Shown here: piece by piece, positions 18,335 to 37,517 of the stretch
Numbering within the stretch: position 1 is the stretch's first letter
How the letters are laid out: each line of letters starts with the position of its first letter
NCBI RefSeq assembly: GCF_006345805.1
Contig: NC_043001.1
Coordinates: 92,256,001 to 92,320,000, forward strand
Source: Octopus sinensis
Taxonomy: Eukaryota
DNA length: 64,000 nt
Reading direction: 5' to 3'
The notes under the pieces: model-generated
What the model was told of the DNA's origin: nothing
What the model saw: only the letters and a program-made list of their open reading frames with translations
Database searches by the model: none
Translations under genes and position numbers: made by a program

Positions 18335-18373
18335 TTAGAAAAACTGAAGAATCGCTGCAATAAGTGTGTAAAC
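18335..18373 (-). CDS. Candidate last coding exon (VYTLIAAILQFF-stop), hydrophobic C-terminal tail
   Basis: Acceptor ggctctcAG has a short pyrimidine tract. Phase 0 matches the donor at 19049 and completes a hydrophobic tail ending in TAA. Confidence 0.4.
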   Translation of the reverse strand, partial: VYTLIAAILQFF

Positions 18374-36300: not shown

Positions 36301-37517
36301 CTGCAAGGTCATGCGCTGTTTATCTTGATATGAGATCACCATGTCGCACACATTTGGTTGTGATGCATGTGCTTCATGTATCCTTATCAGACGGGTAGTC
36401 ATGATGGGCATACTGCGCTTCGTATATTTTGCCCCAGTGTCACTCTGATGGCATGAACTGCTCTCACTCAATAATAATAATAGCAGCGACGACGACGACG
36501 ATGATGATGGTTATAAACGCCAAGGCTGCGGGATGGGGTTTCTGTTAAAGTAATCCCAGTAGTTATAGGCGCTCTAGGCACCAAGAAAGTAATATTTACT
36601 CCGACAAATATTATATAAAAATGATATTTAATATAATATTAATGGCCAAACCCGTAATTATTGGGTATCAGTGATTAAAACCTGCAAATAAAGTAAAAAC
36701 TGTTCGATGAATAGAACAAAGCGAAAAATATGCAGACTCGCCGGTTTCATCATTGAGATTGATGTAACTATGTCAATTGCGTTTATACAGAAATCTGTTC
36801 TATTAAGAACAGTAAGGATTGTTCGAAAGATACTTGATATCAAAGGAAATTAGTTGTGACATGGTATCAAGGACGTTTATTCCAAATGTTACGCATTTGT
36901 GAGCATCGTGATATTCATAATATCACATAGGCGCAGGAGTGGCTGTGTGGTAAGTAGCTTGCATACCAATCACATGGTTCTGGGTTCAGTTCCACTGCGT
37001 GGTACCTTTGGCAAGTGTCTTTGGTAGACGGAAACTGAAAGAAGCCCGTCGTGTATATATATATATATATATATATATATATATATATATATATATATAT
37101 ATATACGTGTGTGTGTGTGTATGTGTGTATGTATATGTTTGTGTGTCTGTGTTTGTCCCCCCAACATCGCTTGACAACCGATGTTGATGTGTTTACGTCC
37201 CCGTAACTTAGCAGTTCGACAAGAGAACCGAGAGACCGATATAATAAGTACTAGGCTTACAAAGAATAAGTCCTGGAGTCGATTTGCTCGACTAAAGGCG
37301 GTGCTCCAGCATGACCGCAGTCAAATGACTGATACAAATCAAAGACTAAAAGAATAAAAGAATAGTGTCTACATAGTATTTCTATAAATTGCCCGTACAA
37401 TTATTAATTAAAAAAATCTATGTTGTAAAATACAAAGACTGAAAACGTAAAACATTACTTACAGAGGAATTGGTACAGAAACGTTCCTAAGAGGAATTTC
37501 CAATTATTTCTTAACAT
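18335..37517 (-). CDS. Spliced gene for a predicted cell-surface protein with three Ig-like domains (signal peptide, two acidic 18-aa repeats, 3 Ig domains, probable GPI signal), about 385 aa
   Basis: Hand model join of 37463-37517, 35645-35698, 35357-35410, 29918-30217, 26482-26799, 26050-26349, 19049-19086 and 18335-18373 is 1158 nt (386 codons including stop). All junctions are GT-AG, phases are compatible, and there is no internal stop. Confidence 0.72.
19049..19086 (-). CDS. Candidate penultimate exon (APSEACNVGLLYM), start of a GPI-type signal
   Basis: Acceptor ctccctttcAG in phase 1, with a weak donor ATG|GTACTG. Read-through instead gives ...YMVLPLPAE-stop at 19025. Confidence 0.5.
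19315..19625 (-). mobile_element. tRNA-derived SINE family C; related copies at about 33480-33700, 40780-40985, 46270-46495 and 57960-58100
   Basis: Minus-strand head GGAGACGCAATGGCCCAGTGGTTAGGGCAGCGG...GGTTTCGATTCCC carries A and B boxes. 3' end is CTTGAAAAGGGCGC followed by (AAAT)n. Confidence 0.8.
21700..23120 (+). pseudogene. RTE-clade LINE reverse transcriptase fragment (dead)
   Basis: Motifs KAPGED, KNYRP, EQAGFR, DYEKAFDS, RQGD and FADD, with stops and frameshifts. Confidence 0.9.
23730..24238 (-). mobile_element. Tx1/L1-type ORF2 remnants
   Basis: VKVLGVCFGPDL...WAERMLSFKGRSEVANAYIASVIIY on the minus strand. 23730-23860 resembles 5050-5130. Confidence 0.6.
24390..25660 (+). mobile_element. 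R4/Dong-type (RLE) LINE 3' fragment, second subfamily, between long (AAT)n tracts
   Basis: GGRGLIQLE, WQEKPLHG, AETEGFLIAAQDQSL, CRIC...HIISGC, RPDIVV, and LLGTAHILRRTL, then a 3' UTR and (AAT)n at 25660-25792. Confidence 0.92.
24589..24726 (+). repeat. (GAA)46 pure microsatellite inside the LINE ORF
   Basis: Counted from the sequence lines; in frame as poly-Glu. Confidence 0.93.
26050..26349 (-). CDS. Ig-like domain exon 3 (SAGFVDIDVGNLEAFVNEVTLVECPLEKEDELKYWKIND...LTVLCISKKNKHMKITLIAKE)
   Basis: 300 nt, phase 1-1, acceptor atatttttcAG, donor G|GTATGT, and a 132-nt intron to the previous exon. Spacing is C-x10-W-x8-C-x16-C-x21-C, with N-D-T and N-T-S sequons. Confidence 0.87.
26482..26799 (-). 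CDS. Ig-like (V-set-like) domain exon 2 (DVGNLFIFDHRDTVPAGSTLRLICEIGESTTLIWYY...SSLTIYPVKPSDGRFNIVC...VNITVF)
   Basis: 318 nt, phase 1-1, acceptor ttttctattgcAG, donor A|GTAAGT. Has a B-strand Cys, C-strand Trp, PGRI D-strand, SLTI E-strand, a variant of the D-x-G-x-Y-x-C motif, and an N-I-T sequon. Confidence 0.9.
27420..27900. repeat. Two diverged direct copies (about 300-bp period) of a probable DNA-transposon end
   Basis: cactgttgtttttgccacaggaaaacagcttct versus cactgttgtgttcgtcacaaggacacaacttct, with flanking similarity. Confidence 0.5.
29918..30217 (-). CDS. Ig-like domain exon 1 (VEPISYRDGGVVFVNVYETGKLTCPFEPGDFLEEW...VFFCLTKKQKNVMFTIQPLY)
   Basis: 300 nt, phase 1-1, acceptor tttctttttcAG, donor A|GTGAGT. 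Spacing is C-x10-W-x8-C-x17-C-x21-C, with an N-V-T sequon. Confidence 0.85.
30540..31205 (+). mobile_element. 3' end of a Tx1/L1-type LINE (ORF2 C-terminus, pyrimidine-rich 3' UTR, AATAAA)
   Basis: TFLSGQPLINFFKYHLKRKVIVERQVLSSERF, then RWVNVARM after a frameshift. Ends ccaataaagaaac before (AT)n. Confidence 0.6.
32285..32435 (+). mobile_element. Penelope-like terminal fragment with hammerhead-like motifs
   Basis: CTGATGA (32338-32344), GAAA (32366-32369) and GTC (32408-32410). Confidence 0.5.
32560..32892 (-). pseudogene. pogo/Tigger-type DDE transposase C-terminal remnant
   Basis: LVAIPGDLT..NKPFK and FRSCGISNALDGTE motifs. Confidence 0.7.
34700..34992 (-). pseudogene. Second copy of the pogo-type remnant
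   Basis: 34840-34992 is nearly identical to 32740-32892. Confidence 0.65.
35357..35410 (-). CDS. 54-nt phase 1-1 micro-exon (ETLNEPDEEPLEKFVTLK)
   Basis: Acceptor tttttgtttttacacAG, donor G|GTCAGT, same length and phase as 35645-35698, 36/54 nt identical by hand count. Confidence 0.75.
35645..35698 (-). CDS. 54-nt phase 1-1 micro-exon (IFTEPYEEAYHKFALSS)
   Basis: Acceptor ttttcattttacacAG, donor G|GTCAGT, open frame, and paralogous to the exon at 35357-35410. Confidence 0.75.
36927..37363 (+). mobile_element. Full-length SINE family B (CORE-type); further copies at about 40173-40585 (+), 51540-51895 (-), 52020-52350 (+), 54850-55250 (-) and 56030-56455 (-)
   Basis: Head GGCGCAGGAGTGGCTGTGTGGT, internal (TA)n(TG)n, and tail (aaagaat)n. 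Confidence 0.85.
37463..37517 (-). CDS. Candidate first coding exon, signal-peptide-like (MLRNNWKFLLGTFLYQFL)
   Basis: Acceptor ttcttttgctcgtttatattcAG ends at 37521 and the ATG lies 3 nt into the exon. Donor is T|GTAAGT (phase 1). The peptide has a basic N-region followed by a hydrophobic core. Confidence 0.68.

Follow-up and report, generated by a model that had tools for sequence, protein, structure and literature searches.

LOC118763564, a rapidly evolving three-immunoglobulin-domain transmembrane protein gene of Octopus sinensis, and its Octopus paralogues

Results

Gene structure of LOC118763564

A 64,000-nucleotide (nt) stretch of the Octopus sinensis genome (contig NC_043001.1, positions 92,256,001 to 92,320,000; hereafter the window) was analysed. 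The window is AT-rich, repeat-laden eukaryotic DNA. On its minus strand lies LOC118763564, the subject of this study, whose product is predicted to be a cell-surface protein of the immunoglobulin superfamily (IgSF) with three Ig-like domains, D1, D2 and D3. The coding span runs from 37517 to 21355 and is divided into six coding exons with canonical AG/GT splice sites.

Coding exons of LOC118763564 in the direction of transcription, with the duplicate (exon 2') of the second exon. Positions are those of the window; TM, transmembrane; aa, amino acids.

37463..37517, minus strand: coding exon 1; ATG at 37517, signal-peptide-like MLRNNWKFLLGTFLYQFL, phase 1 end, donor GTAAGT
35645..35698, minus strand: coding exon 2; 54-nt acidic mini-exon, (W)IFTEPYEEAYHKFALSS, phase 1-1, in the NCBI model
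35357..35410, minus strand: exon 2'; 54-nt tandem duplicate of exon 2, (E)TLNEPDEEPLEKFVTLK, phase 1-1, possible cassette
29918..30217, minus strand: D1 exon; Ig-like domain, residues 37-136, 300 nt, phase 1-1
26482..26799, minus strand: D2 exon; Ig-like domain, V/I-set-like, residues 137-242, 318 nt, phase 1-1
26050..26349, minus strand: D3 exon; Ig-like domain, residues 243-342, 300 nt, phase 1-1
21355..21521, minus strand: last coding exon; stalk, TM helix ANVIVIAASAIGMCLLILFIAIIAIL, 25-aa tail KFTDGLCFKKLKLCDGYLNKDQTDE, TAA at 21357-21355, acceptor ttcttccag

When joined without exon 2', the exons give 1194 nt, and the translation is exactly XP_036359033.1 (P0001), the 397-aa "uncharacterized protein LOC118763564" of O. 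sinensis. The annotated coding sequence (CDS) range on chromosome CM016863.1 is 16,163 bp, equal to 37517-21355. A protein search with the three-domain core returned XP_036359033.1 at 100% identity, together with an O. bimaculoides orthologue and an O. vulgaris model. Since the joined exons reproduce the database protein exactly, the gene is real and already annotated by NCBI as an uncharacterised prediction; a first-pass annotation made from the sequence alone had described it as unannotated-looking, which does not hold. The same annotation had proposed an uninterrupted frame of about 385 aa in eight exons over 19 kb. The frame is indeed uninterrupted, but the exons number six (seven with the duplicate mini-exon) and the protein has 397 residues.

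Three disconnected minus-strand open reading frames, at 29907-30302, 26465-26734 and 25871-26314, had been taken as pieces of the gene, and they are the cores of the D1, D2 and D3 exons. Each core exon is preceded by a pyrimidine tract and CAG and followed by GTGAGT, GTAAGT or GTATGT, and all are in phase 1-1; one Ig domain per phase 1-1 exon is the classic layout. The proposed signal-peptide-like start at 37517 was likewise borne out, with MLRNNWKFLLGTFLYQFL after the ATG and a GTAAGT donor. Exon 1 matches residues 1-18 of XP_036359033.1 at 100% and is kept in O. bimaculoides (17/18) and O. vulgaris. Hydrophobicity of the segment is only moderate (Kyte-Doolittle, KD11, maximum 1.6); from its sequence the N-terminus would be a signal peptide that is cleaved. 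The four N-x-S/T glycosylation sequons counted earlier were all found (N95, N238, N281 and N289), and all are kept in O. bimaculoides.

The same six exons and splice sites were recovered in O. bimaculoides and O. vulgaris. The O. bimaculoides orthologue is LOC106876419 (XP_014780449.1; UniProt A0A0L8GJJ4, "Ig-like domain-containing protein"), with 78% identity. In O. vulgaris, the annotated orthologue CAI9723260.1 (344 aa, OX597818.1) skips an intact D1 exon (L006 37462-37761) and the normal first exon, begins in an upstream repeat-like exon and has a truncated D3. The adjacent model CAI9723261.1 fuses the orthologues of two paralogues, LOC118763527 and LOC118763565, which are described below. 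Both O. vulgaris models look like annotation errors. A literature search on the LOC, XP and UniProt identifiers and on the Sequence Read Archive run found no papers, and a topical search found nothing on the LOC118763564 family, its single lead (SPLASH paper) being irrelevant.

Membrane anchor and the 3' end

The last exon encodes a hydrophobic helix of 24-26 residues (about 347-372), with KD19 values up to 2.94 over residues 353-372. The helix is followed by the charged 25-aa tail KFTDGLCFKKLKLCDGYLNKDQTDE and a stop, an arrangement shared by the orthologue in O. bimaculoides. A TM helix with a charged tail in the last exon predicts that the LOC118763564 product is a type I transmembrane protein. 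The glycosylphosphatidylinositol (GPI)-like end claimed by the first-pass annotation is not seen in the last exon, where the sequence, as read, has no hydrophobic extreme C-terminus free of a following tail. In the tail, a juxtamembrane Cys-Phe (common to the paralogues) and YLN are kept. The Cys-Phe is plausibly a palmitoylation site. No catalytic or known adaptor domain was found in the tail, and its end differs between species (QTDE in O. sinensis, NKD in O. bimaculoides), with no conserved C-terminal PDZ-type motif.

The GPI-like reading arose from a different place. Translation of 18300-18560 in all frames showed that 18335, to which the gene had been extended, is the last base of the stop codon of a short frame ending in VIFGSQVYTLIAAILQFF, and it was the hydrophobic end of this frame that resembled a GPI signal. 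Splicing of the D3 exon to this frame would be in phase, and an eight-exon, roughly 385-aa, GPI-anchored isoform reaching 18335 could be drawn. We regard such an isoform as most improbable. The sole in-phase acceptor lies in a purine-rich stretch without a pyrimidine tract, and the segment abuts a short interspersed element (SINE)-like repeat. By blastn the segment matched nothing within 10 kb downstream of the gene in O. bimaculoides; it had no match at the O. vulgaris locus either, where the 3-kb flank barely reaches the equivalent position and the test is weak. The 3' end at 18335 was rejected on the poor acceptor, the neighbouring repeat and the lack of a conserved exon at the O. bimaculoides locus. 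The models of all three species end in the TM exon with its own stop, which in the annotated O. sinensis CDS lies at 21355; the span to 18335 is thus about 3 kb too long at the 3' end.

The duplicated acidic mini-exon

The first-pass claim of a duplicated acidic N-terminal segment corresponds to two 54-nt mini-exons, at 35698-35645 and 35410-35357, the second 288 bp downstream of the first. They are identical at 36/54 nt and share the splice flanks ttttacacag before and gtcagtttt after. Both encoded segments are acidic (isoelectric point 4.75 for exon 2 and 4.14 for exon 2'). The exon 2 segment has a low predicted local distance difference test score (pLDDT) in the AlphaFold2 model and is therefore probably a disordered N-terminal stretch.

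Exon 2' is symmetric, and including it adds 18 residues in frame to give a protein of 415 aa from seven exons. It is left out of the NCBI models for O. sinensis and O. bimaculoides. In O. vulgaris its sequence is identical and both AG and GT are intact; the model P0003 of that species, faulty in skipping the intact D1 exon, includes it. The O. bimaculoides counterpart has AA instead of the acceptor AG and a 3-nt deletion, and use of the nearest AG would cause a frameshift into a stop. The presence of a counterpart in all three species indicates that the duplication would be older than the species split. From these sequences, exon 2' has probably been inactivated in O. bimaculoides, while the O. 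sinensis/O. vulgaris lineage has kept an intact copy, which may be a cassette exon in O. sinensis.

Three predicted Ig folds

A structure was predicted with AlphaFold2 from a 13-sequence family alignment; an earlier run with two sequences gave pLDDT 35.8 and was rejected. Mean pLDDT of the model was 75.4, and 10-residue blocks inside the three domains were mostly at 76-92. The model has 8-10 strands per domain and a C-terminal helix. D1 (pLDDT about 77-92) has eight beta strands, D2 (about 79-90) includes A/A' and C'' strands, and D3 is at about 70-84. Foldseek against PDB returned 1514 matches at E<=1e-3, with probability 1.00 and a best E of 7.5e-13. The best match was the secretory component of pIgR (7.5e-13), followed by titin I9-I11, OPCML, DIP-alpha, neuroplastin, PTP-delta, IgLON5 and NCAM. 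The top alignments span 310-370 columns at 10-14% identity and cover all three domains. Thus the three divergent Ig folds proposed earlier are backed by the model (mean pLDDT 75, Foldseek E about 1e-12), in which each domain is predicted to be an Ig beta-sandwich. The Foldseek result is a generic three-Ig match and not a one-to-one relative.

At the sequence level the signal is weak. In D2, Pfam Ig_3 reached 17.1-17.8 bits against a cut-off of 30 (E 0.0047) and V-set an E of 0.017. For D2 the PDB sequence matches were sub-threshold only, all to antibody or T-cell receptor V domains and titin, and searches with the family profile and a D1/D3 profile gave nothing significant. One PDB sequence match, to the lectin DEC-205 (E 0.72), was taken as chance. 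The earlier statement that the sequence resembles no recognised conserved IgSF member (IgLON, DIP/Dpr, Dscam, lachesin) agrees with these results, namely no significant PDB sequence match, Pfam scores below cut-off and the Octopus-only profile matches reported in the next section.

The B-strand Cys, C-strand Trp and F-strand Cys of the three domains are C60/W71/C120, C161/W171/C228 and C267/W278/C326. All lie on predicted strands B, C and F, and none of the triads differs between O. sinensis and O. bimaculoides. The conserved cysteines number four per domain: the B-F pair, and a second pair where predicted strands C' and D end. In D1 these are Cys 60, 80, 98 and 120, conserved together with W71, and D3 repeats the four-Cys pattern of D1. 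The positions on the model suggest a second, sheet-bridging C'-D disulfide in each domain. A comparison with hhalign shows D1 to be homologous to D3 (probability 98.3%, E 2.4e-14), and both are only weakly related to D2 (D3 versus D2, probability 65%). D1 and D3 represent one unusual domain subtype, and D2 is V/I-set-like.

Paralogues and distribution

A HMMER profile scan of 1.84 billion (1.84e9) representative proteins gave only 10 matches at E<=1e-3. All the named matches were from O. sinensis, O. vulgaris or O. bimaculoides, and one further match was a genomic Logan contig (run SRR11869385). Word-indexed protein searches, queried with the family alignment or with the LOC118763527 protein (P0006), contributed further proteins from Octopus alone, and the P0006 orthologue of O. 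bimaculoides was not among them. By these searches it is a small gene family detected only in Octopus, where restriction means not seen elsewhere and the representation of non-octopod cephalopods in the searched databases is uncertain. The earlier expectation of a lineage-specific gene is in line with this distribution.

A paralogue cluster was also expected, and two paralogues were found on the same chromosome within about 160 kb: LOC118763527 (P0006; 92.314-92.349 Mb; HMMER E 2e-31) and LOC118763565 (P0007; 92.407-92.439 Mb; E 2.3e-22). Both share with LOC118763564 the order signal peptide-D1-D2-D3-TM, one domain per phase-1 exon, the juxtamembrane Cys-Phe and, in most domains, the four-Cys pattern; D1 of P0006 has lost the B-strand Cys. 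They differ from LOC118763564 in being only 27-30% identical to it, in lacking the acidic mini-exon and in having longer, unrelated tails. The paralogues and the O. bimaculoides orthologue are all uncharacterised predictions.

LOC118763527 lies head-to-head with LOC118763564, its first exon 20.8 kb from the ATG of the latter. O. bimaculoides (spacing 8.4 kb) and O. vulgaris (18.3 kb) have the same divergent pair. The LOC118763527 record starts at 92,314,297, which is window position 58,297, and the remainder of the gene lies beyond the window end. A tblastn search for paralogues inside the window found its first exon only and no further Ig exons.

58297..58359, plus strand: first coding exon (signal peptide) of LOC118763527; tblastn with P0006 residues 1-21, 95% identity

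A Logan contig, SRR11869385_444245 (980 bp, genomic), carries an intact D1-type exon with alignable intron flanks and 57% protein identity. It is probably from another octopod species and would then extend the family beyond the three named Octopus species.

A more distant Octopus IgSF subfamily was also found (P0008-P0013: LOC128247863/4, LOC106874545, LOC115212114, LOC118761523). It shares with LOC118763564 the N-terminal D1'-D2 pair, and the D2 motifs held in common are GNLYP, WY.GNG..AKY and the ...SIIC / H.SMFNITVF stretch. Its members differ in being about 450-800 aa long, in carrying additional Ig domains of classical type that Pfam does recognise (I-set, Ig_3, C2-set_2) and in lacking the C'-D Cys pair; some have long Tyr-rich tails. 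The tail of P0013 (O. vulgaris CAI9722592.1) contains many repeats of EEEQYAE[AV]SGP.YLE[LM] and [GD]VY[AV]N[IV]S. Its tyrosine motifs (YxxL, YxN) recall the tails of signalling receptors, and this analogy suggests that at least part of the wider family may signal through phosphotyrosine.

Rate of evolution

Rates were compared between orthologous coding sequences. dS and dN are synonymous (syn) and nonsynonymous (nonsyn) divergence and omega is dN/dS.

O. sinensis versus O. bimaculoides, whole CDS: 22 syn, 98 nonsyn; dS 0.094, dN 0.113, omega 1.20
O. vulgaris versus O. bimaculoides, whole CDS: 23.5 syn, 98.5 nonsyn; dS 0.101, dN 0.114, omega 1.13
O. sinensis versus O. vulgaris, whole CDS: 1 syn, 3 nonsyn; dS 0.004, dN 0.003, omega 0.8
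O. sinensis versus the SRR11869385 contig, D1 only: 18.8 syn, 60.2 nonsyn; dS 0.39, dN 0.31, omega 0.79

Amino-acid change in LOC118763564 has proceeded at about the silent rate, which accords with the earlier description of a fast-evolving gene (dN/dS 1.2, O. sinensis versus O. bimaculoides). In the same comparison omega of individual regions ranges from 0.7 to 2.0, and D3 is the most divergent domain (dN 0.151, omega 1.37). CDS divergence, about 10%, is at least that of well-aligned intron stretches (2.8-6.8%), a rough neutral yardstick in that only well-aligned pieces were used and fixed-length intron-end alignments are partly spoiled by indels and microsatellites.

Such a rate could be that of a young, weakly constrained gene drifting near neutrality, that is, a real transcription unit with an Ig fold and little or no selected function, perhaps being lost. 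The whole-CDS omega of 1.1-1.2 is not significantly different from 1 (rough 95% interval 0.75-1.9), and weak constraint therefore stays in contention. Many of the replacements are conservative and spread across all domains including the TM segment, the protein collection holds no transcript-derived copies, and the duplicated mini-exon is already disabled in O. bimaculoides. Other features are not those of a drifting gene. The reading frame is intact in three species, and in the fourth, at dS 0.39, the D1 exon is open and keeps all four Cys. In neutral simulations with 120 substitutions scattered over the CDS, the frame stayed open in 0.74% (substitutions alone). The sole CDS indel is in frame, against about 4 gap events in 870 bp of well-aligned introns. 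The 12 ectodomain Cys, the Trp residues of strand C, the four sequons, 10 splice sites and the tail segment FIAIIAILKFTDGLCFKKL are all kept between O. sinensis and O. bimaculoides. Retention of the frame, cysteines, sequons and splice sites despite an omega of about 1 indicates, at the level of sequence, a gene maintained as coding while most of its surface would be free or driven to change. Drift under weak constraint is thus judged unlikely, though it is the most serious of the alternatives.

Comparison with known Ig families

The Foldseek matches raise the question of a conserved neuronal family, since OPCML, IgLON5, NEGR1, DIP-alpha/theta, NCAM and nectin-like 4 are among the top ones and the three-Ig architecture is similar. 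LOC118763564 could on this account be a divergent IgLON, DIP/Dpr or CADM/nectin-like protein acting in synaptic partner matching. The structural matches are, however, generic multi-Ig matches in which pIgR, titin and antibodies stand beside the neuronal proteins, and no sequence-level match was found outside Octopus.

IgLONs (OPCML, NEGR1, IgLON5, neurotrimin) resemble the LOC118763564 product as small surface proteins with three tandem Ig domains, and their Foldseek matches to it have E values between 1e-11 and 1e-9. As a family they carry a GPI anchor, are conserved throughout the bilaterians and evolve under purifying selection. The LOC118763564 product differs in having a TM helix and tail, an omega of about 1 and no sequence similarity; HMMER over the 1.84e9 representatives found Octopus proteins only and the PDB sequence search no IgLON. 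For DIP/Dpr the likeness is at fold level only, at 13-17% identity, with no sequence match. Nectins and nectin-like proteins (CADM, SynCAM) share the type I topology, three Ig domains and a short tail, and the nectin-like 4 ectodomain is among the Foldseek matches. In nectin/CADM proteins a membrane-distal V domain is followed by two C2 domains, and the tail carries FERM- and PDZ-binding motifs. In the LOC118763564 product the V-like domain (A/A', C'') is in the middle, there is no sequence similarity, and the tail lacks FERM- and PDZ-binding motifs as these are generally defined. Neural wiring molecules are expected to be under strong purifying selection, and this general expectation does not fit an omega of about 1. 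Membership of a conserved neuronal family is consequently very unlikely.

Molluscan FREPs (fibrinogen-related proteins) carry a fibrinogen domain C-terminal to their IgSF domain or domains. The product does not qualify as one, as no fibrinogen_C was found in a Pfam scan of family members and the C-terminus is a TM helix with a tail. The V domains of CTLA-4 and CD28 have a second, C'-D disulfide besides the B-F pair, which serves here as a lead only. The likeness is the extra Cys pair near the ends of predicted strands C' and D. The differences are that no sequence relationship was detected and that the additional disulfide would here be present in all three domains.

Repeats and surroundings

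The window contains at least 7 copies of a SINE-like interspersed repeat of roughly 215 bp, which lie in both orientations and are 71-83% identical; the O. vulgaris and O. bimaculoides loci each carry several copies as well. ARAGORN and Rfam scans detected neither a tRNA nor a known RNA in the repeat or elsewhere in the window. A mariner/Mos1-type transposase remnant lies just upstream of LOC118763564 (Pfam HTH_48, E 1.7e-17), with its frame broken by a stop. The last intron contains two long interspersed element (LINE)-like fragments. One LINE-like fragment falls just short of the Pfam threshold for zf-RVT (26.7 bits, cut-off 27.5), and another shows a FADD-type reverse-transcriptase motif by eye with no Pfam match.

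Repeats in the window.

18380-18600, 56033-56246, 8817-9044, 40369-40581, 37136-37350, 11519-11720 and 13025-13140, both orientations: SINE-like repeat copies
38658-38912 to about 39179, plus strand: mariner/Mos1-type transposase remnant
24877-25499 and 22189-22548, plus strand: LINE-like fragments
24231-24430, 24584-24736, 25658-25870, 32122-32311 and 17281-17445: trinucleotide microsatellites, 100-200+ bp each, inside or beside the gene

The gene is 16.2 kb long in O. sinensis and 9.4 kb in O. bimaculoides. Introns 2 and 3 measure 5427 and 3118 bp in O. sinensis against 1562 and 963 bp in O. bimaculoides. The greater length in O. sinensis is due in part to microsatellites and other repeats.

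Discussion

The gene structure, identity, predicted fold, topology class, taxonomic restriction, clustering and evolutionary rate described above point to LOC118763564 as probably a lineage-restricted, fast-evolving type I IgSF surface receptor for recognition or adhesion, encoded by six conserved coding exons. Several observations weigh against this reading. The omega of the whole CDS does not depart significantly from 1, and it is the membrane-proximal D3, not the distal D1, that has diverged most, which is atypical for a ligand-driven arms race. No Pfam Ig-clan model scored above its gathering cut-off and D1 and D3 had no match at all; the Ig call for these two domains depends on a structure predicted from a shallow alignment. 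The extra disulfide is deduced from Cys positions on predicted strands, not from coordinates, and, as a signal peptide, the hydrophobic stretch at the N-terminus is a weak one. Finally, the 90% cluster of XP_036359033.1 has one member, on one contig (the genome itself).

If the receptor reading is correct, the 397-aa glycoprotein would consist of a signal-peptide-like start, the acidic segment, three Ig domains, a TM helix and a 25-residue cytoplasmic tail. It would reside on the plasma membrane, N-glycosylated and with each domain doubly disulfide-bonded, and its Ig ectodomain would bind a partner on another cell or particle. Candidate partners are a second copy of itself (homophilic binding), a paralogue, or a foreign or gamete ligand. 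Because the tail lacks a catalytic or known adaptor domain, any signal would pass via partner proteins or the few conserved tail residues (juxtamembrane Cys-Phe, YLN).

Judged from two and a half lineages, the rate may be one of diversifying selection and not of weak constraint. A rate so close to neutral speaks against a conserved role in neural wiring such as that of IgLON or DIP proteins, and a fast-changing partner (pathogen, gamete or co-evolving paralogue) is preferred on this ground. At the level of sequence, immune, neural and gamete roles are all candidates. As a tentative proposal, which we consider possible rather than probable, the three clustered genes may be an octopod-born family for self/non-self, pathogen or gamete recognition, built from an undescribed, doubly disulfide-bonded Ig subtype and under diversifying selection.

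The claim is modest, the gene being already an uncharacterised NCBI prediction and the fold ordinary. The interest of this predicted gene lies in the Octopus restriction, the paralogue cluster, the unusual four-Cys domain subtype and the omega of about 1. Cephalopods are not known to possess an antibody-like system, and little has been done to explore the surface molecules specific to their lineage. An Octopus-restricted IgSF cluster with amino-acid change at or above the silent rate and the fold-defining residues kept is a candidate for an immune, reproductive or self-recognition function. It also offers a compact test case for the rise of new Ig receptor families by exon and gene duplication. 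If the tentative proposal is true, this Octopus-specific surface receptor family would be a recognition system that arose within octopods.

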